From assembly GCA_977016875.1 (NCBI GenBank), contig CDRNST010000067.1, positions 558,001 through 622,000 of the forward strand: a stretch of 64,000 nt of DNA, written 5' to 3'. Under the pieces are notes generated by a model. It was not told where the DNA came from. It searched no databases and worked only from the letters and a program-made list of their open reading frames with translations. The DNA comes from Pavona decussata. Its lineage: Eukaryota. The position numbers and the translations under genes were made by a program. Shown piece by piece: positions 20,021 through 55,350 of this stretch (positions are counted from its first letter, which is position 1; the number at the start of each line of letters is the position of its first letter).

Positions 20021-21725
20021 TCACTCAAAGCCAGTGAATTCTTCATCTTCGCTGTCACCAAACAAGTTCTGCCACTCTTCTGATGTTAGGTGATCTGCAT
20101 AAGCTCCTTCATATTCATCCTCATCATCAACTGGGGTGGTAGGTACATCTTTAGTTTCCTCCCAGAGAATTTCGTCCTCTGTGCCATCCATCCAATTGGA
20201 AATGCCGCCCTTCTTGAAGCATTGGGCTACCATCTCGGCCGGAAGACTTGGCCAGGCATCTAGGACCCATGAACATACAGTGGAAAGCGATGCTCCTCTC
20301 ATGTTTCCAGCAGGAGTGAAGCTCTTCTGGCCTTCAATCATCCAGTTGTTCCATTGCTCACAGAGACGATCTTTAAAAGGCTTGTTTAGGGAAACGTCTA
20401 GGGATTCAAGAATGCTTGTTAAACCGCCTGGTATTACAGCAATGTCAGTGTTTGTTTGGCGTACTGCTCGCTTCACTAAGTCGAAAGGACGAGCTTGGAA
20501 GGAGTCCCAAACAAGGAGACTTTTCTTTCTCAGAAGACCGCCGGGTTGAGACTGCCATACTGTCTCTACCCACAACTTCATTCCAGCTTTGTCCATCTAG
20601 CCCTTCGGATGACAGAGTATGAGGACTCCAAGTGGAAAGTTCTCTCTTGGCAAAGTCTTCCGTTTGAAGATCACCATGGGCTTCAGCTTTGTTCTGTCTG
20701 CCAGGCACGCAAGTACAACGGTGAACCGCGATTTCTCATGACCAGTTGTGTTGACTTAGGCCCGGTTCAGACGCCGAACTTTTCATGAGTCGAACCTAAT
20801 ACCTCGAATTAAGGACATGAAAAGTTCGGCGACTGAATCAATTGAGAACGGCTGTGTCAATTTGGAACGGCTCAGCCGTTCTTCCCGCCTGGCTCAACCA
20901 GGAATTTCGGCTTTGGAACGGCTCTGATTCAGACGCCGAACTTTTCATGAGCCGAACCTAATGCATAAATTATTTTAACATATTTCAAATACTGAAAAAA
21001 TTAAAAAATAAAAAACAACGCTGACATTTCGATTGGTTTTGCTTCAAGTAAATTAAGTTCGGCTAATTCAATTCGGCGTCTGAATCAAAAGGCGGCATTT
21101 TCGTGATTTGGGCTGACCTTAATTTGAATTAAGTTCGGCTCATCAAAAGTTCCGCGGCTGAACTGGGCCTTACACAGTTTTGGCTGATGGCATGTCAAAC
21201 CAGACAGGCGTTTCGTCCATGTTCCCAATGTGAACAAGTTCATAATTGCCCTTCCTTCTGCTCTTGATTACAAAGCTGTGGAAGTTTGTGATCTTCTGGT
21301 CAAGATCTTCTGGAAGCTTTTGGGCGATCTTCCTCTTCTGTCGAAGAGCAAGAGTATTCCGTCTAAGGAACTTCGTACACCAGCAGCTGGAAGCCAGGAA
21401 CCCCGTTATTTGCAGTTCAGGGGCCATTGCCTTAGCCTTGATGATAATCATGTTGCTGGTGACAATGTAGCCACTCTGTCTTTGCTCTTCGATCCAGTGG
21501 AGAAGCTTGTCTTCTAAGTTGGGCCACTGGCACGGTTTCCCGCGGTTGCCGCATTTGTTCTTTGGCATGCACTTTAGTTTCTTGACTTGCTTTCGCCAGT
21601 CGCAAACCAACTTTTTGTTGACGCAAAATTTCATGGCCTGCTGCACAGTTTTTTGACTCCTGTGCGAACTTGACGACTTGTAACAAACTTAGCTGAATAT
21701 TTCATACGTTTTGAAGACGTCTTCG
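20021..21725 (-). pseudogene. pogo transposase (Brinker-like DBD, CENPB-HTH, DDE_1)
   Basis: WPNLEDKLLHWIEEQR; GNMDETPVWFDMP; SLLVWDSF; VIPGGLTSILESLDVSLNKPFK; acidic tail. Frameshifts and a MITE insert. Confidence 0.88.
20759..21169. mobile_element. PIF/Harbinger MITE inserted in pogo transposase
   Basis: TTA|ggcccggttcagacgccgaac ... gttccgcggctgaactgggcc|TTA; 3-bp TSD. Confidence 0.85.
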
Positions 21726-27772: not shown

Positions 27773-27904
27773 ATGAATATGAATATATGAAACATCATAT
27801 ATTGAACTGCAGATGAAAGATTAAATAGAAGAAAGATCCTCACAGTGAGTACGCAACTTAAATAGTTGCGAGAAGAAAGCCTGAAAAAAATTCAGGCTTG
27901 AACA

Positions 27905-27947
<43 letters not shown>

Positions 27948-28008
27948 CCAACTGAGCTATTAAGTCAACTGGGAGCTGGTCATATTGTGAGTTTGTAATA
28001 TACCCGTG
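27773..28008 (-). mobile_element. tRNA-derived SINE
   Basis: Minus strand: A box TAGCTCAGTTGG, B box GGTTCGAATCC, then a non-tRNA body and a (ttcata)-type tail. Confidence 0.85.
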
Positions 28009-30921
28009 AAACAAGATCTTCAATCATTTTAACTAGGTCTGCTTTCTTAATGTTAATAAGCTGGGATGCTGCCTCTCTCGCTTCCTGCGTCACATACAAT
28101 GTTGTCAATGGTAGGTCTGTTCTTTTTTTACCACTGATGAAAACATTTTCGAAGACCATTTCTCTGTTGGCACTAGCAACCTCAGTTAGATCAACCAGAC
28201 TTTTGTCCAAAAGTTTACCATCGAGAGATAAGTGTGTCTTCTCATCAAATGGGTTGATCAAATAACTGTGGAGAGGAAAACAGTTTGGGTATAGACCGTA
28301 AGAGTGATATGACATTACATGTACATCATGTAAGAGGGCTAAATAACTTACATATTTGCAGTTACCATGAAAATTTAAAGTGTTGAATTACATGGGCCAC
28401 TGTGTCCATAAATAATAAATAATGTGCTGAATAAAGCAAAAATTGAACTTTTGTACAGATCAGATTAAAACTCACTATTTAAGCCTCTTCCTACATTTTC
28501 AGACAAATAAATTTTACCATCAGGTTGATGTGACAGGTACATGTAGTGTTTTCTATAGCCAGCCCCTCTACCCCAACTTCTAGCATACCGTGCACGTCTC
28601 AGTTTTACACGCCAAGCCGAAATTTCCTTGCTTAAGTCTTCTCTCTTTCTGGAAAATTGAGCTTCATTTTTAGGATCCTGCATTCCAAACCAGGAGAATG
28701 TAGCAGCCCTCAGCTACAATGTAAATAAAATAACCAAGTGCTAATTATAATAATAGTTTTTGTTTGCATTGTTTCTTGTAAATACAGTTTGGGAGAAGAA
28801 AATTTTCATGATATATAAAAAGAAATCATTCAAACCACCTAGCAAAGCATTGTAAATCATTATTAAATACAAAAGTTACCTCAGTAAGTTCATCATGATT
28901 CCTGAATATTGTCAACCATTCTCTGGCCGTCATTGCACCATTTTCCCAACATTTTGATGATTAGTTTACTTCTTCCAGTTGGGCGTCAAGACCTTCCCCT
29001 TTGGATTTATTACCACTTGAGCGGACAGCTTCATTCTGCTCAATAAACTTCTTCAGATCCACTGGGTACATGGTCCGCTCACATCTACATGTAGACATGT
29101 GCAAAAAAGGAAAGTACACTTGTCAATAATAATATTACCTTCACTACAAATCCACCGCATTTTCTCTGTCTTAAGGGAAACAAGGTATAGACTTTATAGA
29201 ATAGAAAGAGTAAGTTTTTTTTTAGACCAGGGTCAATAAATTATTAAATTAAAATCACCAAATCACATCATCAAGGATCATTACTGTATGCTATACATGT
29301 CAGTGATACAAAAGGTTCTGAACATTAACAAGTGTGACTTAGTTGTAGATCTCACAGTGGCACTGATAAAATGGACAAATTTTCCCCCTTTGTGTGAATC
29401 AACTAAGTTACCTGTCTTGCAACTCAATAAGCTGGTACTTTGATGTGAAAGGCCTGAAACTGAACAGGGGTGCAAATCCAGTCTGACCACTGTTGACATA
29501 TGCACTGTTGTTCCGCCTGATGCCGATGTGATACATCCTCACAGAACCAATGTAACGCCAAGTTTGCTCTAATAGATACACGTAATTTCTGCATTTCACA
29601 TTAGGCAGCCACTGATACAAATAGTCATTGACAGATATTGGCAACTTACTGGCCATTCTGTCACGAACATATGGCACCAGCCTCTCACACCAGTTTCCTC
29701 GCTCCAAGATGTTAAGCATTGTCATTGAATGGTGATGGCTTTTGGCCCCTTTCGCATAGTTCAAGGCACTTTCTGAGGTGAAGCCAAGTTCCTTTGCCAA
29801 ACAACTTATGAAGACAACCCAGTTCACTGAAAAGAATGTCTTTACCATGTTTATCTCCACATGAAGTGGACCAATACGCAGCACCACCCAATCAAATTCC
29901 TTAGCACAAACAACACCTTCCTCACCCCATCAGAAGCTTCTTTCTGAGCACAGGCAAGACAGAGGACTGTCTCTTTTATAATGCTGACAGCAATCAGGAA
30001 AGGAAGACCATCCATGGTTACAGTAATCCACTCTTGAGAGATCAGCACCACTAAAACCATAACGTGTTATACGTGCTGTGCAACCGACACGACGAAGCAC
30101 TTGAGTAACTGCCTTCTGGGAGTTTGGATTTACAAACACTGGATCAGAAACAGAAATTTTAACAGCATCGGGTTGATGGTTCGAGGGAACATGGCTCCAT
30201 TCAACAACAAATTCTTCATGAACTGTTTTAACCTCCTAGCGCAAACTGGAATCCCCAACAGCCATAACTACCTCATTCTCCTTGAACCTGTAGTGGTACT
30301 TTTTTGTAGGCTCCACAAGTGCTGTGCCCAGGATGTCCTCACCAGTCAACTTTGTCTCGGCTGCTTTCAAATCAACCCTGCATTCTTTGTTAACGCATTT
30401 TCTTTTTGTCTTTGGCATTACTGTCTCACAATTGGGACACACACGACTGTTTTCACTCAGGTTAATTTCGTTTACTCTCAAATCAACATCATCTTTCCAC
30501 AACCCACTCTCAACCATTTGCTCAGAAACAACATCCTTTAGACAGTCATGAATCAACAGCTTATTCTGAAAATAAAGACAAAATTAAAAATGTTTAAGTT
30601 TAGTTTAAGGGTCATTATCTCGTGATGTAAAGGTCTAATGTTTTTTTTGGTTTGAAAATATCTAACCATTATTTAATTTTTATTTTCCTTTGTCTCTGAT
30701 TTGTCATGGTAACCCTTATCTGAGACAAAAGAAAATTAAAAGTAATGCAATACAATCAAACAGTTGCATTTATTATATCAAAGCAAATCTTTAAATTTCT
30801 ATAGAGGATCAGGGTCTTGTGATACACTACTGTAACTGGTTAGTAAGTAGTCCTAACACAATGTAAGGGAGCTTTCACTATGATACAAGTTGCCATTATC
30901 AGATTTGCAAACTGGTGGCTA

Positions 30922-31049
30922 TGTTGTGGTTCAATTTTATCCTTGGTTTAATTTTTATTTCCCTTTGTTTTGGGGTATGGTAATGTATGATAATGAGTTT
31001 AAAACAATGAGAAAAAAAATTAAACCAAGGATAAATTTGAACCACAACA
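30922..31049. mobile_element. Hairpin MITE with TGT...ACA termini and 4-bp TSD
   Basis: GCTA|tgttgtggttcaattttatccttgg ... ccaaggataaatttgaaccacaaca|GCTA. Confidence 0.8.
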
Positions 31050-31584
31050 GCTATACCTCTCTTCTCAGCAACTCCTGCATCTCATCTGTGAATTGGATTC
31101 CCATTTGGAGTTGCTTGTACAAAACTTCATCATCCTTTGCTTTGTCAATACCATCTAGTCAGCATCTATGTAAGATAACAACTTATGTTAAAAATGGATC
31201 CGAAATGACCTGTAACAGCACTTATGTCTAATACATATCATGTAATGCTCTGTTTCCTTAAGCCTCGTTTTCACTAGTGATGCAAGCACAAGCGCAAGCA
31301 GCATATGCAGACACAGTAATGTGTTGATTTGTTGTACACGAAAGGCACTGATGATCCATGCATAACTGTTTCTGTGTATGTTGCTTTAGCATTTAAGTGC
31401 ACATTGTATGAACTTCTTCAACATTAAAAGCTTGTACCAAAACAAAGCACTAGGAAAACTTCAATAAACGAATGTAAATGACTTTTCCTGCCTGTCAAAA
31501 ATAAAACTATAATGTCATTTAAAAATAACAACTGAGCTGACTGACCATACTAAAACAAAAGTAAGGTTTTCAAGACATTGTCTT

Positions 31585-32095
31585 GTTAGTAAAAGTAAGT
31601 AAGTAATTTATTTAGTGTCAAATACACAGGGGGTGGTCTCCCAGTCCCCCGAGCCACAGGCTGATGATATAAGTGTTTGACAGTATAAAAAAAAAGATAA
31701 TAACTACTAATTAAATTAAAAAGTAACATCTAAATATAAATAAATAAAAATAAATCGGGTCAGAGGCAATTGCTGCATTGACAGCCGTTAAAATTTAACT
31801 TAGTTAAAAGTCTCCGAAAGGATGATGCATTAGGTGCGTTTTTTACAGCAGATGGCAACTGGTTCCAGATGTGTGAGATCATGTACGCATATGAGCCATG
31901 AAGGAATCTACTATTGTATGAAGTTTGTACAACATTTAGACCATTGCTTCTAAGATTATATGGTGTAACTCGGGATTTGAATAAATTGGCTACATAGCCT
32001 GGACCATTCTCCCTGAAACATTTAAAAAATATCATCAAAGATTGTTCTATGCGTCTATGTTCCAATGTATTCATGTCTGCCATCCTAAGAATTGA
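31585..32095 (-). mobile_element. CR1/L2-like LINE 3' end in an intron
   Basis: TLEHRRIEQSLMIFFKC..PYNLRS..IWNQLP; minus-strand aataaa followed by a (ttac)n tail. Confidence 0.78.
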
Positions 32096-34499
32096 ATTTA
32101 CTGCATGTATAAATTATGGCAACAATAATTATCCTTATTATTATTCTTCACAATGATCACTGATAAGCTTGCAAAATAATAATTGGCCAATTAAATATTT
32201 CTGATAAAAGCAAGATAACGTGTACCTTGGAGCAAGATCTCCTCTACCACCACTGTCAACCTCAGCCTGGCAAACACTTGTCACCACACTCACTCTTGCC
32301 TTTTGCCCAACTTTCACTTTCCATTTTCGTTGCACAATCTGGTCGTTATCGATGGCGACCATACAGTCTCCAGATGGAAACTCCTTAGCTTCTGAGGTGA
32401 GATCTCTTGTCCAAACTTTCAAAGTGGAGTATGATCCACCAGGAAGAGCCTTGCCAAACATGTTAACTGTCAACTTTAAGTTACTTATGGCAAGGAGACT
32501 GATATTGGTCATGAAGCTACATGGCCCAACAAAGTTCACACCTTGTAGACTATACAGATGTTCAAGAGCTAAACATCGATGAAAATTATTCTTCTCAGGG
32601 GAAGCAATGCCATTCACTACAGCTTTCACTACAGAATTCCTTCTCGAAAACCAATCCTCTGCCCTAAAACTCTGCAAGGTATCAAGATCCTTGTAGGTTT
32701 GGGCAAAAGACTGGCAGTCCACCTGTATCTTTTCCTTTTGAAGCTGGACAACTTCAAGCACCACCTTTGCCTGTACATTTTCTGGCATTTTGCAAAGAGA
32801 GTCAGTAAAATCAGCTGCACTGATGATATAAAGACCCTCTGTATGGGCTAACAGGTCCACCAATTGTTTGCCAAGGGACAAGCACAGTTCCATCAATATA
32901 GTTCGCTGGTCTTGAGCTGGTATCCTTCCGATGCATTCCTTCAGGCAATCCATAGTCAAACTATACACTATAGGAGGACTTAATTCATCTTCATCCTCTG
33001 AAGCAGAGTCATTATCCATTTCTTCATGTTCAGTTGTGGTCATGTTCTTATTCTGACATTTTCTTGCCCTTTTGGCTTTTGAACTTGAAGGCCTCCCTCG
33101 TCGTGGTTTTACTGATGAGTCACACACAGCACAACTGTCACTATGAGGATACCACGTTTTGAATACTGTGACAGTTGTCATTTTACCTTGAAGGTATTCA
33201 CCTTTGCCGCAAACTAGATGGCATTTGACACAAATAAAACGTGGATGGACATTAGGGGAATCCCAACAAAACAGACACTTGCCAAATTCTGTTAACTTTA
33301 GTGGCCAAATTGGATGCGACTACTCTTCGACTTTTATCTTTAATTTTCTGCCCACAAATTCTGCAAAGAGCCTCAAGTTTTTCGAGGTGAACTTCCATGC
33401 CAAGATAAACAACCCTATATAAAGAAAACAACAAATTAAAGCCTATTCTCCTCAGCGAGAAAATGAAAACAGGACAAAATCACGCAAGTCTATCTTGTTA
33501 CTCACGAGTGTAATGAAGCAGCGGTTTGGATACAATTTCACTACCTTGACTTGTACAAAAGTCTACCAGAAATCTAGCTTATCTACCATGTGGACACTTC
33601 GCATAACGAAAGTTTATCTACATAAGAACCGGCAAAAAATAATGCAAGCTTCGTGAAAAATACGTGAATACAGGAAAAAAACAAAAATTGTTCACTTACC
33701 TTGAAACCACGACACAAAATGGCCCTACATCGCTTCGTTTCTTACTCGAAAGTTCACTGATAAACGCATGTATAAACACTATGGTCGCATCCAAAATGGC
33801 CGCTCAAGACTCCTCGCAATGTTTCGTAACTAAAAGTCCCGGATGACCGCTCATACGTTGCTACAGACAATGGATTTTAACATTGCCCGGGCTTTTTGAA
33901 AACCAGCCGCCATTTTCTTCAGAACAATGGATTCATGACGTCACGACTGTCCTAAAAGATTGGGATAATCCAGACTGTTAACGTATGTAAATAGAATAAG
34001 AAGCGATGTATGAGGCGCGATTGTAAACGTAAAAAGTTGATTTTACAAGGTTTGCAATAAACGCTGCCCTCGAATAAACGACGTATCTTAAGTGCCAAAA
34101 ATTTAATAATATTATTAATTTAATTATATTAAAACTTTTGTTGAGCATTGAAATTGGTTGGCCATCGCGCTGGGTAGTTAGATTAAGAAACCTGCATGGC
34201 TCTGTTGAAGCCAGTCCGTATACCGTACTGCGCAATCTCAGAGATTCGATGGGTTGAAACGTCCGATTACACCCGAAACTATTGTGCGTTTTTTAATCAA
34301 GGAAACGCTGTTTTCGAAGTTTTGATTCGAGAGATTAAAGTACAATCAAGCATAATTATGTGCAGCGTACTGGTAGCAATCGCGTGTTTCCATTCTCAGC
34401 TTGTGAAACAGCGGCCGAAAAAGTCGCATTCTTTTAGTTTCGCTTCCTTCACTGTTTATTTTTATTCAATATTCAAGTTCCTGATATAGTTTAACAATA

Positions 34500-36821
34500 A
34501 TTTCATTGATGTGGCGTCTGAGGTGCAGGAGCTACACTGTCTTCTGTTCCTGGCTTACAAAATTGTCTTATCTCACGGTAAAGATAAAGTTTACGTTCTT
34601 CACTCTATCCATTTGGTTCAATCACCGGAGGAGTAGTGCTTGAAGGTGGAAGTACCGCTTGATCTTTCAACAACATGAAAGAACGTTCAGGACTGTTTGC
34701 AAATTCTTTATAATAAACCATTCCAGGGTTTTGCTCAGAAAACCTGAAATGATGGTAGCTCTTGATGTTTGGTAACTTTCTGAAATACTGGCCAAGGAAG
34801 GAAGCCCAGTCATAAACAGGTATGATGATTCTGCCATCGTGCGCAAGTTGTGCCTTGTTTAGGCCACTGGAGTTCTCGACCAATCTTGCAAATTCATAGC
34901 GACGAGATATAAGTTACTTTGTAAACTTTCTTGATTAACCGAAAGCACCGATCGGGGCCAAACTTAGTGTGTCCCGCTATTAGAAATGAGTATGTAATTG
35001 AGCGGTGAAGTTCCAACAAAATTCTGTAAGCTAGGTACCAAAGGAAAAAATTGTTCTTGTTTGGCCGGCGCAGTTGTTGGCATGAAGATGAGCATGCTGT
35101 TTTCCCAGTCCGTAGTGTTCAAGATAATAATGCACGTAGCTGATCGTTGCCTTGGCTCCTTTTCCTGCGGAGACTGCTTCGTCAATTAAAAAGTTAACTT
35201 GGCGAGGAATCCCTTCGCACATAACTCCAAAAATTCCACATTTTCGCGGAGTCTTAAAATATATCGGTCCCGGTTGTAGAGGATTGCTTGGTACGTGTAT
35301 TTGCTGCTCAAAGTCAAAGGTGTAATGTATTGTTGCATTTAAAGAACAGGGTCCGCGGGTTTCACAGTTAAGGAAAGTGTCAGTGTCAAGTGTTTCAAGA
35401 ATTTTTTCACAGTCGTTGCACGAATTTCTGTATAATTCTCTTTCGGTTTGCGCAGTGTTCAAGTGTTCCTGGTGAGCCTTTACACACTCTGATTTTTCTT
35501 CATCCAAGAGGCGGGCAGCCCGCTGTAGTTTTGTGGTGTGTTGTTGACATGTTAAACAAAGATCCGTCATAGGTTTAGCTACCACCACATCAGGATAAAA
35601 CTCGTCCTGTAACTTACGGCTTTCTCATTCTAGGCCTTGCAGGTTCCTTCATACTCTTTCCACACGCTCATTTTTGTCTCCGACGAAGACAAGAGTCTGA
35701 TTTCTTCATTTTTAAATGCAGGAATCCTGCTTGGGAGCACAATGGCATTTTCTTCCACATAATTTTCAATTAACGCATGGATTGGTTCGAGAGATTTTTC
35801 GGACGTTGCATTTCCTGGCAAACATTTGGTGTTTCCGTGAATTCTTGAGAAAATTCCGTGCTCCTGATAATGTTCCTTTAATCTTCGAAACCTGGAATAG
35901 CCAATTCCGTACAAGTGTAAGGACATCTCCTTGCATATGGGGCTCATTTGGTAAATAAAACTACACCGAGGACTCCTGCTTCTTTTGTCGTCAGCCTTTT
36001 CTCTCTTTGTGAATACTTGAATATTTGCCAGGATAGCAAGGTCGAGTTCGGCGCTAGAAAGCTCGAGGCAGTTATTCAAATTGCAAAGAACTGTCTCCTC
36101 TGTAAATTGATCGGAACATGGGCGACCATTTCAACCAAGAGCACAACCGCAAGTTTCCCGCATGAATTTCTTTACCTTTTGCACGATGTCATCAGAGTTG
36201 TCGATTTCAAGCTCAGCCATTTTCGAATTTTCGTGTTGAATGATCTGGCGTTCAAAATAAAAACAATCATTGATTGTCATAATAACTGTTGCCATGGCAA
36301 AATGACGACAGTACTGCAGTCGCACGCATGGCTCTGCATGTAACTAACAACAGCTGCGATTGTTTTCCTGCTACTAAACGCCAATTTTTTGGTTCCGTAA
36401 TGGTTTTCTTTTTTGATAGCGACTGCAATTATTTCTCCTATCAAATGGATACGTTGAGAATGGATGTTGAAGCCGTTCAAACGGTTGTTGCAATTCTTCG
36501 AACAGACGTTCTAGTTGCCGAACGGATAAAATAAAATTAATGGATACAATTAACCGTTCAACGGATGCGAGAACTGTTCGAACAGATGCGAGAACCGTTC
36601 GAACGGATGCGAGAACCGTTCGAACGGATGTTGCAATTAACTTCGAACATATCTCAGAACCGTTCGAACGGATGTCAAAATCATTCAAACGGATACGCAA
36701 ACCGTTCGAACGGCTTGTTGAACGCTGTGAATGGATTTTTTTTGGCGTTCGAACGGATAACGAACCGTTAACGTCTTGGAACAGATAACCGTTAGTGTCC
36801 GTTTTGCCCTTCACGGTCACA
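34500..36821 (-). mobile_element. Sola-like DDD DNA transposon (right terminus TGTGACC; left end not seen)
   Basis: KPMTDLCLTC; FDFEQQIHVP..QPGPIYFKTPRKCGIFGV; NFLIDE..GKGA; HANNCAGQ; GHTKF.PD; YDWASFL; YLYREIRQFCKPG. Terminus ...cacggtcaca|ta. Confidence 0.72.
36470..36795. repeat. Subterminal array of ccgttcgaacgg motifs, including 21-bp tandem units
   Basis: (aaccgttcgaacggatgcgag)n at ~36552-36630 plus dispersed copies. Confidence 0.85.
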
Positions 36822-37049
36822 TATTCAAGGATGTCATACCCTTACACATCAAACATAAGTACTCAGATGAAATGAAAAATAAAACAGAAACAGTAAGATT
36901 ATTATTGTTACAGATGTAACTCAGACTAACCCAATTACTTATCTTAGATCTTCAAAAATGCATGACATTGGAATTTATCAATAAAAAAAATATTGAGTAA
37001 AAACAGTAAAAAATAACTAATGTCAGTTTCGTCATTTTCTTCACATTAG

Positions 37050-38941
37050 GTTCATCTTGGTGTTATTTTTAGAGATGAAAATTTGGGAGAGAACATGATC
37101 GATATCGTAAGGGAACTCCATGGATTGGTGCCAGTTGCACTCGATAATGGAAAAGAGGTGTTTGACCGTGTCCCTGTTGTTGGAGACCAGGAAACAATGG
37201 AGAGAGGGGTGGAAGCACAGTTTTCTGTACGCAATGCCTACAGCAAAACACGTAGATTGGAGGGCCTGTTCTTTCAACTTGCTGATTGGCATCATGAAAA
37301 CAAGCTCCTATCAGTAAGTTTTTGAAACAAATTACTACCACGTGACACATCATTGTACAGTCAAACCAGTAAAACCACAACTACTTGAAGTATTTCAGGA
37401 ATATTTATTGTGTTAGGACACAGAAACTAGCAGCAAAACCACAAACTAAATAACGTTCTTGCTTGCAGTTTATTCTCTCACACCTGACTGACTTTCTTCT
37501 TGCAGCACAATAACATTTTAGAAATATTTCCAGTATTTACAGTTTTCCTGGTTTCATGAAAGTCTGCAGTCAGAGAGGAATAACTCATCACTGTCACAGT
37601 GTGTGTCAATAGGAAAAATTAATGAGAATATTTTCTTTTTCTGTCAAATCACTACATATGAGAACTATTATGAGAAACCACCTCTCCTGTGTGACATTTC
37701 GAGAGAATGTTTCATTGGAATATAAATGAAATACAGCGGTTCCTCAGCATCGGACAAGACTTCGCTGTTTGCTTTGAGAAACCTTGTGAACTGGCGTGAT
37801 GTAGTCAGTGATGCCCAGCAAAAACCTGCTCCATGTAAGCGATTTGTGAATTTGGTGTTGGATGCAAGTATCATTGCTGCAGCCCTTAAGTTCTTTGGCA
37901 TGGAAACAACAGAAGACACACCCACAAAGACCAGTATCAGCCCAGGATTAGCAACAGGACTCAAGGTGGTGCGCCAACGTTTTTTTTTTTGATAGAGTGA
38001 TCAAAGAATTCATTCAAACCTATGTAGTTGATGGAACTCTCTATGAAAATCACTTCAACAATATTCAAGCACTACAGGAATGCGAAACAGCCCTAACTAA
38101 TCAGCCTACACCTCCAAATGGCAGGTACCCCTGTAGATTCCCAGGCTGTTGAAGGTCATTCAAACATGATGGAGTCCACAGGATGAGGCATGAACTGTCT
38201 CATGACCTCCCACCCACCATTCCTGAGGAACCAGTACTTGGTAATACTGTGCCTGATTCTACTGATCAAAATCCTAAACCCAAAGATGACATGTTTGACT
38301 ATCACTGTGGCTTCATGAACATGGCTTTACTGTTACGGAACTTCATGTATGCTGTAAAAGAGGATGATGGTGAAAGGATAATAAGATGTATCAGGATGTT
38401 CCTTTTACATTTCAAACAGGATGGCAGTGGCAGCACCAAGTATGCTTTGGAGACTTTGTTCCACATGTTTCAAATGTATGCTTTGCTCAATCTTAGAGAA
38501 GCAGAAAGGATGAAATGGAACAGAACAGTCAACAATCATGGCAAGCCAGGATGTAATGTTGCCATGGATCTAGCCTTGGAACATGACAATCATTTGATCA
38601 AAGATATGATTAGAGGTCTGGGGGCTAATATCAGTGAAGCTAGTGTTCGTAGAATCTGTAGGGCATTCTTTGTCATCAAAGCGTTTTTTGAACACCTAGA
38701 CCTAGAGATGAAAGTTAAGAAAATCTCAGGTGAACATACCAAGAAATCTGTTGGGTAGGATTTGAGGAAAGTCGTTCAAACACTTCATGAACAGAATGTA
38801 TTTGATAAACAGCCAACCCGGGAAGCAATGTTTTCCTTTCGTGACTGTCCAAGAGACTACCTCCAATTGCAAGAATCAAAGGAATTATTCTCTCGGATAA
38901 ATGAGAATAAGGAAAATGTCAGACTTGGGAAAAGACCGTGA
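37050..38941 (+). pseudogene. Academ-type transposase (DUF6589-like), copy 2, 5' part missing
   Basis: VVGDQETMERG..RLEGL..ADWHH|gtaag; SLFALRNLVNWRDV; C2H2-like C..PGC..H; AVKEDDGERIIR..TKYALE..WNRTVN..NVAMDLALEHDN. Confidence 0.82.
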
Positions 38942-39020: not shown

Positions 39021-40050
39021 ATCTACTGAAGGGAGCCATTTTGTCTAAAATACTTAAAATGTACCTTTCTACAGAAAGCTTTATCAATGGGACACAAATC
39101 TTTCTTTTTTTCTCTCGATATGTTAAAGGACCCTAGTCAGCCTCCGCGATTTTCAATGTTATTGAAATTATTGATATTGCTGTTTTTGCATGGTGAAGTG
39201 AAATCGTATTGCTTAACTGTAAGTTGTGTTCCTGGCAAGCCATAAAACTGACTTTCTTTGCACCCTGTTCTTATGGTAGGTTGTCTGCATTAGGTAAACA
39301 TTTTTAATTGTTAATTAATTTAATGAACATTCTTTGTACAATACCCTCAAGGCCTTACAGTATAGGCTTAAGTTAACATAGACTTCAATGAAACTGATTC
39401 TGATACAGCTTTACCACCCAATAAAGAATATTGTTTCGCAATAATTTCAAACATTTTTCTAAAATTTTACAACCGATATGAACAGCTTTTTGACACAAGA
39501 AATGGGATATTTCAACAGACCATTCACAACACTGTTTATTTACAACAATTCTGTTTACCCAACAGACTTAGTAGCCTCTTGTTCCAAGCAAGACTAGATG
39601 TGGATCAGCTGAAAAATACCAAGCCACATTTCCATCTTGTACCTAATGAACTATATCACAATATTACAAGTACTTTCTGCTTGGATTGGATGTCTAAATC
39701 ATCTCACTGTTGAAAAAACCTAAAAAGGCGTTTGACCTTTGCAGGGATAATGAGCTGGCAGACCCGCGACACCATGGAAATCGAGCCTATGACAATAATA
39801 TTAGTAATTTGCATATTTGTGAGTTGATGTACAGTAATCTGATCCAGTTTTCTAACTAAACCAAGGTTTTTTTAAAAATCTGATTTCTTACTTAAAGCAA
39901 CATGTACTTGTCCAGGTTAAGAAAAAAGGAAACAAACACCAGACATCATGATACTGTTTTGACTGCTTCAGTAATCCCTAACAGCTAAATATAAAAATGT
40001 AAAGAATATCATGACATTTGTGGGTTAACGGATTGAACAAAACCTTCAGT

Positions 40051-43000
40051 TTACTCAACGTCAGAGCCGGACTTTTCTTCATTGGCTGCAAAAAGGCTAT
40101 CCTCAGGAGTATAAAACATTTCTTCTTGAATGCCAGCCAAGACAGAATCCTCAACGTCAAAATCAAAAATGTCCAGATCAGCAAACTCTGATGTGTCACT
40201 GTGTTCAAGCTCTTCAACAGGTTCACACACATCAACATCATGGAAGACTTGGCTAAGGTAAACAAAACTTCTAAGGTCACACTTAAATTCCAAATGTCAA
40301 CAAATTTGAAAATGTCAGTGACACTGAAAATGTTCTCACAATTGGTACAAATCTGTTCCACATGCAGATCTCCAAATGCACCATACAACTTTGCAGGAGT
40401 AAACAATGGCACGTTTTCAAGTCTTACTCTGCGCAAATATTGCCCTCTCAAGGCTTTCTTTAGGTAATTCAACTTTTGACGTAGATTACCCCTCTGAGCA
40501 TCACTCACTCCTCTAGAAATACAATCTGTTGGTCCCTCTTGGATATCTGTTAACTGTGACTGAAAGAAAACAAAATCACAACAGCCCCCCTGGCATTTAC
40601 AGTTTTTCTTGCAAAAGTCATAACAGTTATGCGCTGGTTCAGCTGAAGGCAATTTTTCGAAGTCAACATCAAAGTTTTTAAGGAGTAATTTCCTTCTGCA
40701 TGTAGATGTTTCCCGCGCATAACTTTTTATTTCCTCAGAACAGTGCTTCATCATAAGGCTTGAGTAGAGAACCACAGACTTGCACATCTCATCGTTTGAC
40801 CTACCAGCCCTGCCGCTTTCTTGCAGATACGTTTCAAGGTTGTAAGAAGGGCCATAGTGCAGAACTGTCTTGACATTCTTGCAATCAATGCCCATGCCAC
40901 AGGCAATGGTGGCTATCAAGACACGGACTGAGCCATTTGGTTTTCCCATTGACTCCAAAATATGATCTCTATTGAGATCATCAATTCTATTGTGGAACAT
41001 TTCCACAGTCCTCTTCTTAGGGTCACCAGAATTGCCAATGTACGTCTCATCACCAAGTTCTGACACGAAGAAAGAATACAAAAAAGTGGTGACTTTAATT
41101 GTCTGGCAATATATTATTGTCCTCTCAGTTAATCCTTTTTGTTCCCGTAACTCTTTAACTAATGCCTTGAATGTTTGAGCAGGATCAGGGGTGATAACTT
41201 GAACAGCATAACTTATGTTACTTCTGTTTGGGCTATCCATTATCAATGCTGGGCTTTTCATCTCAAGAGACTGCATGATCTTGAGTCTTGTGGAAGTGTT
41301 CACTGTAGCAGTCAGTGCAATCAGGGGAACTTTACCGACGATTGAGAGGATCTAGTTTATCTGGCCAAACCATTTTCTAAAAGCCATTTCTCCTCTCTTC
41401 ACTGCATAACCGCTGAAATGAAAACATACAATAACATGTTAACTGGGGTGTAGCGTGGTTTTTCCAGTTAGTTATGCACAGGAAGGAGTAGTGAAACAAT
41501 CACAGAAGACACAAGCCTCTAGGGTGTGCTCTCTGAAATCTTTTTTTATGATTTTCAGGGGGGAATAAGTAAGTCAATAAAGACATAAATGAAAGAAAAT
41601 ATATATTTTTTTAGATTTTTGAGGTACACTCATGATTAAGTTAAAGTTGTGGATAGCATTTATGTTCCATTTCTACTTAGTTGTTTTTGCCATTTCCTTT
41701 GCCTCCTTTCCCTAGATATTCATAATCTCAAACACTTAAAACCAGATAGCACAGGAACTTAGGAATAATCCTAGGCAAAAAAAAATTATTCTAGCTGTAA
41801 TTTCTATCAACAACACATAATTCACGTACATGCCAGAGAGACAACTGAAGACTAATTTAATACACGTGATTATGTATATGTCTAGGAAAGGAAATATCTC
41901 TAGCACCGCGACTGGTTGTGATATATCACATGTATGTCTCAAAATAACATCTTCTTTAAAGAAATACAGCACAGCTACATTATCTTATCATACTTTGAAA
42001 CTGAATCATATAATACAAATCGATTACATGTAAGAGTGTATTCTTCATCTAGGTATTCCACGGTTTACAATCAGAATTTGTCCACATGTTAATATAAAGA
42101 ATAGCTTCGCTTTAATTAGCCTCTATTTCCGCCGTCTCTGAAAGAGTGCTTACGTCTTAAAAATAAGCTTAAGTAAATGCAAAAGGATGAGAGTCAAAAT
42201 ACAGAGGGAAACGCGTAAAGGCCAATAGACTTACCAGTGAGAAATACAGGGCGCTTTCCATTCGACCAAAAATTCCGGAATGAAATTTCGAGTATTCCAT
42301 GTGACGAATGGAACAGTATTTTCCGGTTGGTTTGAAAAAAGCCGTCCCAGTCCATCACGTACCAATTTTCGCGCGAAAATACCAAATAAACAGGGGAATA
42401 AAAAAATGGCGGACTCTTTGTCTATTTTACTTGCTTTAGAGTTGCTCGACGACTATGAAGTTGAAATAAGCGAAGTATTGGACAAGGACGACGACATAAC
42501 GCTGTTCAGTGTGGGTAGCTCCTACATGCCTAGGAATTTAAACCGAGTCCGCGACTACTTTGAGGGCACGATACCTTTCTATTTTCCTGACGAGTTTAGG
42601 GTCACTTCAGAATTTTCGCACTACTTACGAAAGTTTGCCGTGGCTCCGGTGCAAAAGTGGTGCAAAAGAACATTCAAGTCATCTGTCGCATAATAACAAG
42701 CGGAACACTGATATTGAGCAGAAGAATTAGAAGCCATGTTGAGTTAGATTTCCGGGCTCTGAGAAACTGGACGCAAGCAGGATCTAGGAATGGTTGAGTG
42801 GAACGGAATTTTCCGGTTATTCCGATTTTCCGGAATTTTAGGCCAACCTCGCGAGGTACACCCAAAATTCCGGAATGAAATTCCGGAAAATGTCTGTTCC
42901 ATTCGCTTCCAAACCCGGAATTTCCGGAATTTTTGGTCGAATGGAAAGCGCCCACAGTAAGCTTCATCAATTGCAACCAAACACAATCTCTCTTTGTAGA

Positions 43001-43436
43001 CATCGTTGCTGAGCATTGCCCGCCATCTCTTTGTAGATAAAAATGCCTCAGGTGAGCCATACACGATTTGGCATTCCCCGCGTTCCACACTTTGCTTCGC
43101 CTCTTCGCTCTCCTGTTCGTCCCCTATAAACTCGGCCTTGATTCCCACGTACTTAAGGTATCGCACTTGGTCTTGCATAAGAGATTGCAAGGGAGAAATC
43201 ACAAGTGCAATCAACTTCGCATTTGACAAAGGTCTCACTGTGTCAAAAACGATCGGTGCGGACTGAAAAATCAATGATTTTCCAGACCCCGTTGGTTGAA
43301 TAATGAACACATCTTGACCTTTAACTATGTGTTGCAGTACCTCTTGCTGAGAATCTTTTACATTTTGAAGTTTAAAGGACTTTAAAACTTGCTCGAAAGC
43401 CAAATTCATCTTATTGACATCGTCGGCCATTTTCAC
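40051..43436 (-). pseudogene. RecQ-like helicase of AcademH element (copy 2), convergent with transposase copy 2
   Basis: QPTGSGKS; ISPLQSLMQDQV; YGSPE; IDEAYCISHW|gtaag (after removing the insert); ALTAT; VLIATIACGMGID; YLQESGRAGR; CRRKLLL. In-frame stop at ~41352. Confidence 0.9.
42249..42953 (+). mobile_element. PIF/Harbinger deletion derivative inserted just after helicase motif II
   Basis: ACA|gggcgctttccattcgacc ... ggtcgaatggaaagcgccc|ACA; residual transposase-like N-terminus RNLNRVRDYFEGTIPFYFPDEFR. Confidence 0.85.
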
Positions 43437-43604: not shown

Positions 43605-46600
43605 CCAATGCATCTCTATTTGAGTGCTGCTGTTCAGGGACAAAATTGTGTCGTAATTTTGTCGTGAGGCATGTAGTGTCTTGATTAGTGGAGTTTTCAT
43701 GTAGCGATAGTGAAGGGGAGGCTGCCAAATGGCGTGACGAGTAGCCTCCAGGGTACCAAGGAGGCTTGTTACTTCCTGTGCTGGTGATTTGGGATTGGAA
43801 AGAGCCTTTTGGCATTTCTCTTTTGGTTTGAGGATTTTATTCTCTGGGAGACTCAGAGACATTGCCAGGGAGTCTATAGAGAGGCCCAGGAATGTAAGGG
43901 ACTGAGTTGGTTCCAGTGATGATTTGTCCCAGTTTATTGTGAACCCAAGCCACTGCAGGAGGTCGAGAGTCAGTGAAGTGTTGAGTTTTCATTCCTTCTT
44001 GGAGGACCCGAGAATCAGAAAATCGTCTAGGTAAACAATAATTCGGATGCCGCGTTTCCTCAGGAAGGCAGCATTTGATTTGAGCAACTTTGTAAACAAA
44101 CTAGGAGCTATCTTTGGCCAAAGGGTAAGCCTTAGAAGGCAAAAGATTTGTCCCTCCATTAGAAGCAGGTATTTTTAAAACCTCTCATAAATGTGAACCA
44201 ATAGATAAGCATCCTTTAGATTGATGGATGTCATGAAGTCCCCCTTGTTCAGGAGGGATTTCAGGCACGAAATGTTTTCCATCTGAAAATGGTAGTGTTC
44301 TGCAAAATGATTGAGACGGGACAGATCGATGACTGGGCGGTATGAATCTTCTTTTTTGGGTACCAGAAATAATCGGCTGTAAAAGTTCTTCTTGGTAAAG
44401 GGTACTTCCCTTACAGCACCAAGTGCAACTTGTCTGGCCACCTCTGCATCCATGAATGGGACAGAGGAGTCGAGAGCATTGCCACTACTGGAGGGCTTAG
44501 TTGAACTAAAACACAACAAAGAGGTATTTGATAACCTGACACAACATTCAAAATTTCTGGGTCTGAAGTCACTTGCTTCTATCTTTCTAGGAAGTTGTTG
44601 ATCCTTGGTTTGGGGTACCCTTTTTGGGACGAAAGGGCCAGGAGTTTTTTGGTCGGTTGTTTTGATATTTGAAGGCAAATTGATTAGGCCTACGAAAAGG
44701 GTATTGGCTCTATTGGTTAGACCCAGGCCTATAATTATGTCTGTCTCCTTGGGTAGACATATGTGACCGTGCACGGGAAAACGTACCTTAACGCTTATCC
44801 GTTAAACGGTCGCTAACGGACGGATAGATAACGGATAGTTAACGGCCTGCACAGCATTCTAACGTTTTATCCTAACGTTCTAACGGTTATCTAATTGTGC
44901 CTAACGGATGATCAAAGCATGCTAACGCTTTGTTCTAACGTTCTAACGGCTAACTAAGTATGCCTAATGGATGAAGAGAAAGTTCTAACGGTTGCCCAAT
45001 TTGTTCTAACGGATGACTGGAGCCGTTTAACGGTTGTCTGACGGTTTACAACTAAGGACTTTTAACGAACGAATAGCTTAGCTTTCAGTCCGATGCTATA
45101 AACACATAATCAGGCCAAACCATTAGTAGTCTTACACTCACGTTTGTTTTTTTAAAAAAAGAATCGCAAAGTGCCGATTTCGTCAGTCGTCGATGAGACA
45201 AACATAAGTATACTTATTTCCACAGAAAGCAAAACTCAGTGATATAAACTATCACTTCCTCATCGAGATAAACAAACGCAGAACTCAAGTCCTTCGATGA
45301 TGATTATCGTGTGAGATGAGAAGTTAGTCCGAGGCTAACGTCGCTAAACGAGCGTGTAAACAATTTCACTTGCCAGTCGGGGTGAACATTTTTTATTGTT
45401 TTACTCAAATGGTTTTGTCGGTTATACTTATTTTACACAATGACTTTGTCTAGAGTTTTTTAAAGTAACTGTTTAATCCAGCTGTGGATTCGAGAAAGAT
45501 CACGCTTTCAATTTCTTGATAAAATGCGAAAAGCGGTACCTTTAGATTCATGAGTCTCGAAGCGACAGGCGTTTTGTTGGCGCTGGTTTCATCAGATAAA
45601 GTTGTTTTTGTCACATACATCTTGTTTAGAATTGGTTTCTTCTGATTCAAAGTCAGACACAACGAGACAACAGGCTATCAAAATATTCATCAAACTTCCC
45701 GCCCGAATATGGCCGTTTCTCACATCTTGGAAAATGTAAACAACTTTATGCAAATTTTTGAACCCACATTTTGTGAATTGAAACCTGCCGAATGTACCTT
45801 GATACATGTGAAGGAATTTGGATGCCTAGCACGTGACCAAAATCTTGCCAGTGTTTTCAGCGTGGCAATTCCTTTCTACGTCCGAAGGACGGCTTTTGTC
45901 AGTATTTTATAACGTTAATAGAAGCTTTAAATCTTGTAAAAGATGGTATTTTGGCTTTATCCAAGCGAACGTACTGAATATAGAAATGCGTCAAGCGTTA
46001 ATTTGCGGTACTCAGTAGACTCGCAGTGTTTACGTTTGTTCCGGGTAATCGATCTTATCGCTCACACTGGACCCGAATGAAATTTTGCAAAATTGAAGTT
46101 TCCTATTTTACCCCAAGCCCTTAACCAACGGAATTGCCTTGCATCTTTAAAGTCAACTAAACGGTTACATTTTGCGGCCGGAGACAGTAAATGCTAGAGG
46201 TAGAGTGAGGGAAAGTTCATGGTAAGTCAACAAATATGCAAATCGGAACCGAAGCGCGCTGGAGGAGAGAAGTCTGTTGAATTTACTGATTTTATTCCGG
46301 GTCGTAATTTATTTTTGTGACTTAATTTCATGGATCCGGAGCTACGATATCTTCCGTTCCTGGTTTACAAAACTGTCTGATTTCGCAGTAGAGATAGTTC
46401 CCGCGTTCCTAGCTACATCTCATGATTGTTTTGAACTAAATGGAAGCCAACTACAAGAGCCACTCTCGTTTTACACTGTGTTTAGGCGACCACATTCTAC
46501 TTCAACGCGTGTCATGCCATTCTAACCGAATCGTTACCCGTTTAACGGGTGCTGGTTTATTCTAACGGATCCTAACGGCTTCTCTAGCCGTGCTAACGGA

Positions 46601-47620
46601 TACAGATTGTTTGCTAACGGTTATGCTGTCCAGTCTAACGGTCTGATGCTAACGGCTAACGGATACATGTCTTTTGCTAACGGTTGCACTATCTGCTCTA
46701 ACGGTCCGATGCTAACGTCTAACGGTTGGGCTTACGCCTCTAACGTTCTTAAAAAAACTTTCTAACGGATGACTAACGGATGCTTAACGCTTTTGCCCGT
46801 TTAACGGATAAGCGTTAAGGTACGTTTTCCCGTGCACGGTCACATATGCGAAAGGTGGTGTGCTTTCGCTGATGTGTGAGCCAGGTTTTTGGCTAGGCGT
46901 GAGGACAAGTCAGCCTCTTTTGAGGCAATGGAAGGAAAGTCGTTGCCAAACAAGGAGCGGTTCACATTAGGGAGACACTGGTCAGCAAGACCTATTTTGT
47001 TCTTGTTGACATTTGCTAGAACCTTCTTTCTCCTCAGAACAGAGAGTTGGTGGTTTGCAGAGCCCAACAGGCATATAGTTTGTTCAATTATACTTTTTAT
47101 GTCCCCTAAGGGAACTTCTTGGCCTTAAGAAAGGGCATCATGGAGAGAACACAAAGGACCAGTAGTGTTCAGGAAGGCTCTTTGGACTGAAGCCTTTTCC
47201 TTGTCGCGGTGCTGAACAAACTTTTTGGTTTGAGGTTGAGAAATGTGATTCAAAATAGTGGGGTCCAGAGTAGGAGCATAAAGGCAATCAACTGGTGGAA
47301 CACTAAAATTGTCAAGAATATCAACCACCTGGTCATAGGAGAGTTTCCTCCTAAACTTTTTTTCTAAAAGTGCTGAAAGTTCGCTTTTGGCTCCCAAGAA
47401 GTCCGAGTACAGTCTGGGTCGTACAGAGTGGTGTCAGATTCAGCAGCAGGCGTGCTGTCTTTTGGCAGGTCGCTGCACTTCTCTGTTGACTCTAAGGTCT
47501 GGTGTGGTAGCCTAATGGCCGAGTGTGATGGCTTAATAGCCGTGAGCGGTGGCTCAAGTCATTTGCTTGTTGCTGAGTCAGAGTGCAAGTTGTCTTCATT
47601 AGAGGCCTCAGAATATTTCT
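43605..47620 (-). mobile_element. DIRS1-like retrotransposon remnant (gag-like region and RT)
   Basis: FYSRLFLVPKK..RPVIDLSRLN..FQMEN..INLKDAY; VYLDDFLI (~44020); LGFTINWDKS..P..TFLG; gag-like LSVLRRKKVL..LFG. Confidence 0.82.
44762..46844 (-). mobile_element. Non-autonomous ~2.1-kb derivative of the Sola-like family
   Basis: TA|tgtgaccgtgcacgggaaaacgtaccttaacgcttatccgttaaacgg, perfect ~48-bp TIR; retains ERGNYLYCEIRQFCKPGTEDIVAP (~46335-46410), matching the C-terminus at 34520-34600. Confidence 0.85.
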
Positions 47621-53303: not shown

Positions 53304-55350
53304 ATGGCGTCCCTTCAGAACAACATTGTTTACGGTCCTTCGTTTTCACTGAGGATGATATTCCTGGCAGTTCGTTGGATGGAAGAAATCCGAATCGATT
53401 GAAAAATTCCGAATTAAAGTTTTGGTTGAAGTGTCGTGGCGATTCGTGTAAAGGATTGTCAACCAAAGCTCAACTTTGTAAGCGGTAAGTTTCGAGACCA
53501 AACAATAAGCTTAGCGTCGTTGCTATGGCCTAGAGTCTCAAATATTTCCATTATTTTACAGGGTAAACGAGTACTTGGAGGCAAACATTACCCACCTCCT
53601 TGTTGATCCAGACGAAAATGTCATTTATACTAGGCGTAAAAGACGACTTCTCGGTGGTCAGGATAATTCTACTAATCCAATCTTACCTCCGGTCGACGAG
53701 CCACCTCACAACACAAAGAAGGTAGCTTTTACTGCAAATGGATGGGGAACATCTCTGGAAAAAAGTCCACTGTTTACCCGTGCAGAAATGGATAGTCATA
53801 TTTCCAAATCAGGGAAAAAGCACAATAACAGCGCAGATAATCACACGTTGCCCACAGGACTGCGGAAAGCGAAGGGTTTTCTTGCTGATGAATACCTTCA
53901 TGAGATACAAACCTATCATGATGAAAGGTATTTCTATTATCGCGCCAAGTGTTTTCACAGTTTCAAAACTCGTGAAGAGCCACATAATTTGAAACTTGCA
54001 CTTAGTATTGTTTCTGGAGAAGTCGAGCATGCATATTGTGGGCCAAGTTGTGCAGCTGGAAAGTCAGGATTGTGCAACCATGTCCTGGCTTTCATGATGA
54101 AAGTATGTAAATACTCATTGATTAACTGTAAGGATGTTCGGGACCTGAGAGATGAAGAAGATGAAAACCTGAGCACAGCATGTACTTCTGCCTTGCAGAG
54201 CTGGCACCGATCAAGACTTGACGGGATCCCTGCCCAGCCTGTTATGGAAGTAGTGATTTCCAATCCAGTAAACAGTGCTGATAAAAACAAGAAGACTGGG
54301 GTGACTTGCCTAGTAACCGAAGCAAGGAGAGGGGAAAGTGACACTAATGGAAAACTAAAAAATTTAATTGAATCTCTTGAGCAGCATAGCTCAAAAATAG
54401 GTAATACACAAGTTGTCGACACTGCTAGTCTTGATACTTTGCCTACTGTGGACACTCGCTTTGGAAAATGTCCAGTTGGATCATATGGATCATACCAGCT
54501 ATCCTTCACAGAGTCTAATTTCTCTTACATAAGCTCGTTTGATGGATCTCAAGAGGTTGCTCACTGCACAGCAACTGAATTCCCTGCTTACCCCTCTTTT
54601 CCTTTGGATGAATGTAATGGCTCTTTAGTTCCACCAGACAATCTAACTGAGAAAGAGCAGGAACTGCTAAGGAGTCTTAATGTAAATGTTATCAAGGCCA
54701 ACAAAATAGAAGAAAAGACAAGAGAGCAGGCGGAGTGTGTGGAATGGATGCAAGAACGCAAAAACAGATTTACCGCATCTAACTTTGGGAAAATTTCAAG
54801 GAGGGAAAGGAACCATAAGAAGTTTGTTGAAGATCTTTTGGCCCAAAAACCGATTTCTGCTGCGGCATTGGAACATGGCAAAAAATATGAACCAGTGGCC
54901 TTAAAAGAATACGAGAAATATCTGCGTAAAGTGGGAAAGCCTGTTAAGGTACTCAAAAGTGGTCTGTTTGTGTCACCTAAAGTTCCAATTTTAGGTTGTT
55001 CACCTGATGCTAAAGTCATTGACTTGAGCTGCAAAGACAGCTTTGGAATTGGGGAAGTGAAATGTCCTTCTTTTAAATTTAATGTTACACCCCTTGATGC
55101 TTGTGACGACCCTGGCTTCGTCATGGAGAAGAAAGATGGAAAACCCACATTGAAAAAAGGACATGTCTATTACGACCAAGTACAAGGACTTATGGGACTA
55201 ACTGGTGCCCAGTGGTGCGATTTTATTGTTTATACAATTAAAGGACTTAGTGTGGAGAGGATCAAGTTTGATCAAGATCACTGGGATACCCTCTGCGAGA
55301 AACTGTGTAATTACTACTTTAAATATTTCCTTCCTGTAGCTGCTCTGTAG
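53304..55350 (+). CDS. SAP-like + SWIM zinc finger + YqaJ/lambda-exonuclease protein (two exons; exon 1 appears frameshifted)
   Basis: Exon 1 LKNSELKFWLKCRG..KAQLCKR|gtaag; CGPSCAAGKSGLCNH (SWIM); ACTSALQSW; WMQERKNRFTASNFG; GCSPDA..GEVKCP; YYDQVQG..WCDF. Confidence 0.85.

Follow-up and report, generated by a model that had tools for sequence, protein, structure and literature searches.

We report that the region from position 33977 to about 28011 on the minus strand of a 64,000-nucleotide stretch of Pavona decussata DNA (GenBank assembly GCA_977016875.1, contig CDRNST010000067.1, positions 558,001 to 622,000 of the forward strand; hereafter the window) is very likely a relic of an autonomous DNA transposon of the cut-and-paste type, in whose transposase a two-zinc module is joined to a DDE core. 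The module resembles the N-terminal zinc domain (NZD) of RAG1, and the family to which the window copy at 33977-28011 (-) belongs is referred to below as the NZD transposon family. Tentatively, we propose that this family represents an unrecognised metazoan-wide lineage in which a type I NZD is fused to a DUF6589/Academ-type core, accompanied by 5-bp duplications and a MADS-like second gene.

Evidence for mobility comes from the comparison of copies. DNA homology among the window and two other loci, L001 and L003, is confined to the unit and begins at one exact base, 33977 in the window, with unrelated flanks. An earlier note on this sequence had suspected a terminus at about 33976; it sits at 33977, where three copies at unrelated loci lose their homology exactly. 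Scanning metagenome contigs with the terminal 18-mer recovered ten coral-metagenome contigs, in which the same 30 nt are followed by one of two interiors, one corresponding to the 5′ end as in the window and the other to the 3′ end (L006, a human oral metagenome contig, matched the 18-mer by chance and was excluded from every comparison). The 30-bp terminal repeat of the family, CAGTCCGGATTATCCCAATATTTTAGGACA, opens 5′-CAGTCCGGATTATCCC..., and the termini read 5′-CAG..CTG-3′ in all copies. A 5-bp target duplication was found in all three of the complete copies:

L022, 210-3096: duplication GTAAA, both ends inverted; a 2.9-kb internally deleted derivative.
L032, 9392-20253: duplication ATCTA, both ends inverted.
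L034, 9509-15797: duplication GTAAC, both ends inverted.

A search for the inverted terminus with up to three mismatches returned no 3′ end in L001, and L003 has a degenerate 3′ end with no clear duplication. Intact copies measure approximately 6-11 kb and contain an intron-bearing gene for a transposase of around 1000-1100 residues. The inverted repeats and duplications of these genomic copies agree with the transposon with common termini that had been predicted, and the target would be cut with a stagger of 5 bp. Recombination signal sequence-like ends and a RAG2-like partner, which the earlier note had also suggested looking for, did not emerge: the repeat is not heptamer/nonamer-like, and no Kelch/PHD open reading frame (ORF) is present in the 3′ region of complete copies.

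What the 3′ part of complete copies does conserve is a second ORF on the opposite strand (L003 14462-14791 (-); L034 11984-12343 (-); L032 16415-16759 and 16786-17064 (-)). Its product is weakly but consistently MADS-box-like, reaching 22.5 bits on Pfam SRF-TF (cut-off 26) and E 0.006-0.03 against MEF2A, MCM1 and SRF chains. We also observed a conserved 5′ subterminal TGACGTCA palindrome (window 33920-33945 (-)) and a conserved 3′ subterminal block containing CCAAT, ..CAACCAATGAGAATGCAGGG.. (L022 240-290 (+)); the two could be inward-facing promoters of the two genes.

The window copy itself is a multi-exon transposase pseudogene on the minus strand, extending from 33977 to ~28011, with one non-coding and six coding exons whose borders are all GT-AG. 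Its exons were not joined into one protein; each was searched singly, and full-length database relatives stand in for the complete product. The features are as follows:

33978-33982 (-): 5′ flank, minus-strand GTTAA; presumably one half of the target duplication, which is 5 bp long in complete copies elsewhere.
33948-33977 (-): 5′ terminal inverted repeat, 30 nt, beginning 5′-CAGTCTGGATTATCCC; the L001/L003 homology starts here, and the same 30-mer stands inverted at both ends of L022, L032 and L034.
33977-33700 (-): 5′ untranslated region (UTR) exon; the part inside the repeat (33700-33947) is non-coding and promoter-proximal, includes the TGACGTCA palindrome; a conserved GT donor marks its end.
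33414-32226 (-): coding exon 1, ATG at 33398; putative RAG1-NZD/Chapa zinc module, RRGRP basic stretch, helical region and first Asp motif AIDNDQ.
33089-33398 (-): putative two-zinc module with AT-hook-like RRGRP; PF12560, profile match to 21wb_A and to RAG1 residues 101-268, eight conserved ligands.
31165-31057 (-): coding exon 2, recognised by splice sites, translation and L001/L003 homology; in-frame TGA at 31161-31159.
30565-29412 (-): coding exon 3 (core), with an intact equivalent at L001 12284-13489; C4 zinc ribbon CPNC...CVNKEC 30439-30380, DPVFVNPNS, TMDGLP 30018-30001, C(2)C 29961-29950, EFDW...GPLH 29899-29849, IRRNN and KYQLIE.
29084-28880 (-): coding exon 4, Glu motif DAQLEEVN 28987-28964; in-frame TAA at 28963-28961.
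28713-28589 (-): coding exon 5 (..AWRVKLRRA..), matching the C-terminal region of the relative P0033 and L003/L032.
28265 to ~28011 (-): coding exon 6, incomplete; homology to intact copies ends at ~28011 (L003 alignment).

The splice donor of the non-coding exon, CAAG/GTAAGTG, is kept in L001 according to the DNA alignment. Damage to the window copy amounts to two frameshifts, three stop codons, one 58-nt deletion and the loss of the 3′ end. A +1 base in the run 33262-33264 breaks the frame of exon 1; we take it to be a single surplus base, the extra G corrected at first reading, because the first two zinc motifs lie in different frames and intact relatives read through without interruption (...IWQVSVLVDSPNVHP...). 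Exon 3 carries a TAG at 30238-30236, a second +1 insertion near 30041 and the 58-nt deletion near 29930, which takes out both His of a C2H2 finger. Apart from the surplus base in exon 1, none of this damage figures in the earlier note. Nothing of the element is preserved beyond ~28011, so that the gene is incomplete and both the second ORF and the 3′ inverted repeat are lacking; in the window as a whole, neither the 3′ region of the family nor, with up to three mismatches allowed, its 3′ inverted repeat was found. The partner half of the GTTAA duplication is missing because the copy lacks its 3′ end, and with one transposon end absent the copy is immobile. It is thus dead, 3′-truncated and inert, can be neither expressed nor mobilised, and is without functional importance. 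A tRNA-Ala(GGC)-like sequence at 27894-27966 (-) adjoins the cut-off point; it may be either a tRNA gene or the tRNA-derived head of a short interspersed nuclear element.

The N-terminal region of RAG1 is described by three motifs, H-x3-L-x3-C-R-x-C-G, D-x3-I-h-P-x2-F-C-x2-C and W-x-p-h-x(3-6)-C-x2-C (PMC1131882). All three are matched in exon 1 of the window, at 33389-33351 (HLEKLEALCRICG), 33253-33221 (NVHPRFICVKC) and 33154-33122 (WYPHSDSCAVC), all on the minus strand, and the third is followed by the basic stretch RRGRP at 33103-33089 (-). The RAG1-type spacing and the RGRP AT-hook that had been noticed in the first coding exon are therefore present at 33389-33089 (-). On Pfam RAG1_imp_bd (PF12560, cut-off 23.3 bits), the long piece of the exon scores 27.2 bits and the short piece 21.4, and the same family is detected in 29 of the 47 full-length relatives from which the family profile was built. 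Mouse RAG1 is matched by this profile at E 2.2e-11 in the solved structure of its N-terminal zinc domain (21wb_A) and, in full-length chains, at residues 101-268 only; no ZAD chain of that search does better than E 0.4. Eight ligands are conserved across 39 modules (H4, C12, C15, C56, C59, H85, C89 and C92, read from alignment A8), arranged as an N-terminal His, two Cys pairs and a C-terminal His-Cys-Cys. The N-terminal His with His-Cys-Cys constitutes the 'type I' pattern, which is known from RAG1 and from some Chapa domains (2026 NZD study). These comparisons of sequence support the assignment of the N-terminus specifically to the RAG1 NZD/Chapa module, as opposed to the generic zf-AD or THAP alternative against which the earlier claim had been set. 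Zinc module and AT-hook together would bind the DNA of the transposon ends and/or serve nuclear import, as proposed for RAG1.

Downstream of the module, the 47 proteins share an invariant set of residues, numbered here after P0033: D402-N-x-Q, D668-G-x-P, C685, C688, H701, E716-F-x-W, H728-x-E730, R845-x-N847 and D911-x2-L-E915-x2-N918. The corresponding motifs read earlier in the window are all found, with AIDNDQ at 32356-32339 and GPLH within 29899-29849, and they place D402 at 32350-32348, D668 at 30012-30010 and E915 at 28975-28973 (all minus). An AlphaFold2 model of P0033 residues 240-1000 (761 residues, 55-sequence alignment) reached a mean predicted local distance difference test score (pLDDT) of 90.1 and a predicted template modelling score of 0.86. 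It sets the first Asp on a strand, followed by a long insertion with a C4 ribbon, a further strand, the second Asp, a helix, the C2H2 finger, a last strand, a large helical insertion and a late helix bearing the Glu, an order compatible with a DDE domain. D402, D668 and E915 would coordinate the metal ions that DNA cleavage and strand transfer require. From N- to C-terminus, the transposase would thus consist of a type I NZD/Chapa module, an AT-hook-like stretch, a helical domain and a DDE domain split by the C4 ribbon and the C2H2 finger.

By its sequence, this core does not appear to be RAG1/Transib-like, as the earlier note had held. The match to RAG1 stops at residue 268, the Pfam RAG1-core gave 0 matches among the 47 members, and no Transib chain appeared at E ≤ 10 in the family-profile search. 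Likewise, neither RAG1 nor Transib structures are found among the 50 Foldseek matches listed for the core model.

The only recurrent Pfam match of the core is DUF6589 (cut-off 27 bits), to which 25 of the 47 relatives match and for which two of them, P0063 (37 bits) and P0080 (28.7 bits), pass the cut-off. Two stretches match consistently, one around G-x-(L/G)-H-x-E-x-N and the other from RRNN to D-F-x-L-E-E-x-N. A neighbouring transposase in the window, 37083-38758 (+), reaches 85 bits on DUF6589. The Glu region of the core aligns with this ORF, and its DWHHEN and DLALEHDN stand where the NZD transposon family has G-x-L/G-H-x-E-x-N and D-F-x-L-E-E-x-N, in line with the relationship to the neighbour's family that had been inferred from shared motifs. 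One detail of that comparison has to be changed: the pairing of IDNDQ with GDQ.T is probably wrong, as by DUF6589 profile positions the neighbour's GDQ.T pairs with the MDGLP of the second Asp, the 27 extra residues of the NZD transposon family being the C2H2 finger. In our reading, the core is a divergent relative of DUF6589, probably with an Academ-type transposase fold and not a RAG1/Transib core.

A connection of DUF6589 with Academ is suggested, indirectly, by the surroundings of this neighbour and by the distribution of both in fungi. A gene with DEAD and Helicase_C domains, 39978-43436 (-), is convergent with the DUF6589 transposase, and together they have the gene content of AcademH. 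As of 2017 Pfam contained no family for Academ, which reaches its highest abundance in rust fungi (PMC5751038), and DUF6589 has been reported as enriched in a rust fungus; literature searches on DUF6589/PF20231 returned nothing useful, and the supplement of a paper on fungal co-option does not mention DUF6589. Termini of the neighbouring element were not found, the inverted repeats there belonging to another element of 2.1 kb. Target duplications measure 3-4 bp in AcademX and 9-10 bp in AcademH (PMC10045372), and the 5 bp of the NZD transposon family fits neither. No Pfam match to an XPG nuclease or a helicase was obtained in the 47 proteins or in the 3′ regions.

Members of the family are broadly distributed. 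A word search with exon 1 recovered coral relatives, including an Oculina patagonica protein. The profile search of a representative library yielded 1332 clusters at E ≤ 0.001, 429 at E ≤ 1e-10 and 64 at E ≤ 1e-30. Full-length members of about 870-1260 residues, all annotated as uncharacterised, come from amphioxus, sea cucumber, sea urchin, oyster, clam, mussels and the annelid Owenia, so that the distribution covers corals, amphioxus, echinoderms, bivalves and one annelid. 

Several results weigh against the reading of the element and its core given so far. The coral copies reach only 13 bits on DUF6589, and the evidence that equates DUF6589 with Academ is indirect, consisting of the helicase beside the neighbour and of the way both are distributed among fungi. 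No EFDW-coding 12-mers occur on either strand of a published bivalve 'Academ' library, a weak negative from a crude word search; DWH-coding 9-mers occur in the same transposable-element library at chance level and are uninformative. With Foldseek, no PDB entry matched the core model significantly (E ≤ 0.001): the ISCth4 transposase came closest (E 0.24, probability 0.6), with Hermes and the P element only at about E 1. Because there is no significant structural match, we read the RNase H-like fold from topology and conserved residues. Finally, C(2)C, LH and the His pair are all placed between the second Asp and the Glu, which is the pattern of CMC and Transib transposases (PMC12730594; PMC4079192).

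This last point leads to the strongest alternative, namely that the family belongs to the already described Chapaev group of the CMC clade, including Chapaev-1/2_BF and the Aplysia N-RAG-TP/Chapaev-N_ACa, so that only the host species would be new. We consider this possible, though rather doubtful. In its favour, the Chapa domain has been reported only from Chapaev, Chapaev3, TransibSU and RAG1 (PMC4411706), a restriction repeated in a 2026 preprint, and according to a 2026 structural study no transposon lineage other than Chapaev retains an NZD-like domain consistently. Amphioxus proteins are the nearest full-length relatives, and the family is also found in molluscs; C(2)C, LH and H(4)H all occur between the second Asp and the Glu; and the 5′-CA..TG-3′ termini and a duplication inside the 2-5 bp quoted for the CMCT clade (PMC12730594) would fit. 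However, Chapaev elements are characterised in the literature by termini of the form 5′-CAC..GTG-3′, by duplications of 3-4 bp and by three motifs, C(2)C, LH and H(4)H (PMC4079192), whereas the NZD transposon family has CAG..CTG termini and duplications of 5 bp in 3/3 copies. In P0033, moreover, the motifs (C685-x2-C688, H701-x4-H706 and L727-H728) have their Cys and His pairs 13 residues apart and modelled as one local C2H2 finger, instead of flanking an insertion domain. Chapaev transposases have been equated with Pfam DUF1280 (PMC3985635), which was detected in 0/47 proteins at E ≤ 0.01 and in 0/19 at E ≤ 0.1, against 25/47 for DUF6589. No similarity to the RAG1 core was found with hidden Markov models (HMMs), and no named Aplysia or 'N-RAG-TP' protein appeared in the searches for relatives, among them a word search from a bivalve member, these searches being shallow.

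Two further explanations are very improbable. The first is that the likeness to RAG1 is no more than a general zinc-finger similarity of the treble-clef/ZAD type, not due to specific common descent: the AlphaFold2 model of the N-module (sequence of the intact relative L001, pLDDT 82) has Drosophila ZAD domains as its best solved fold neighbours (7po9, probability 0.98) and one relative has a weak Pfam zf-AD match (E 0.034), but by sequence RAG1 stands at E 2e-11 and ZAD at E 0.4, all eight ligand positions and W-x-P-H agree with RAG1, and the RAG1 NZD has itself been reported with ZAD fold neighbours (2026 NZD study). The RAG1 NZD entry 21WB was not among the Foldseek matches of the module, which may reflect its absence from the fold library. 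The second, scarcely credible for the coral copies, is that the gene or pseudogene belongs to a multigene family of the host that descends from a domesticated transposase: the GT-AG introns and the 5′ UTR are conserved, and in amphioxus and bivalves the annotation treats members as ordinary loci with isoforms, but the inverted repeats and 5-bp duplications at three loci, the internally deleted L022, the different flanks at every locus and the decay of many copies contradict it there; individual domesticated members may exist elsewhere.

The origin of the N-terminal region of RAG1 is still debated, and the NZD transposon family bears on the source of this module. Should the proposed lineage be real, the NZD module would have moved between transposase superfamilies, and the RAG1 N-terminus could, against what is currently stated, have come from or be shared with elements other than Chapaev. 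A family outside Chapaev would widen the set of candidate donors and make the module exchangeable between transposase cores. A family inside Chapaev would require the published hallmarks, CAC termini and 3-4 bp duplications, to be revised, with DUF6589 and not DUF1280 as the nearest Pfam relative. What the earlier note observed is confirmed, and its interpretation is borne out in part; its Academ label, the distinct lineage and the role as donor of the RAG1 module are still conjectural, Chapaev elements being already known to carry this module (PMC4411706). The present analysis provides the NZD transposon family with defined termini and a duplication of 5 bp, and adds a confident model of the core as well as intact copies fit for biochemistry.

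Other mobile elements share the window. A perfect 52-nt inverted repeat pair (44758-44809 and 46797-46848) bounds the 2.1-kb element mentioned above, and a third arm, 82% similar, lies 8 kb upstream at 36780-36824; because of this third arm, we take the element to belong to another transposon family, present here in two or more copies. Further ORFs comprise a PIF/Harbinger DDE_Tnp_4 with HTH_Tnp_4 at 55788-56852 (-), a YqaJ/alkaline-exonuclease ORF at 53575-55350 (+), a DDE_1 (pogo-like) fragment at 20021-20596 (-) and a Pao retrotransposon peptidase at 4293-4904 (-).

The NZD transposon family can be compared with four known systems. With Transib/RAG (ProtoRAG) it shares the 5-bp duplication, a hallmark of that group (2026 Transib preprint), termini starting 5′-CA and, in an invertebrate family, a RAG1 N-module; it differs in a core without detectable similarity by HMM or Foldseek, in repeats that start CAGTCCG and do not resemble the heptamer/nonamer (CACAGTG), and in having no RAG2-like partner. 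Relative to Academ/DUF6589, it has an extra zinc ribbon, a C2H2 finger and the NZD module, and most members fall below the DUF6589 cut-off. Like Chapaev/N-RAG-TP elements, its members are inverted-repeat DDE transposons of invertebrates (amphioxus, cnidarians and molluscs) with a Chapa module at the start of the transposase; they differ in the MADS-like second ORF and in the published hallmarks discussed above. Next to RAG1, the family has no RING finger after the module and another catalytic core, and its module is without the vertebrate-specific insertion (helix H2 region), as are RAG1-like and Chapaev modules. The module itself agrees with the RAG1 NZD in its three motifs, in all eight positions of the zinc ligands and in having a type I second site, and in both a basic stretch comes next.

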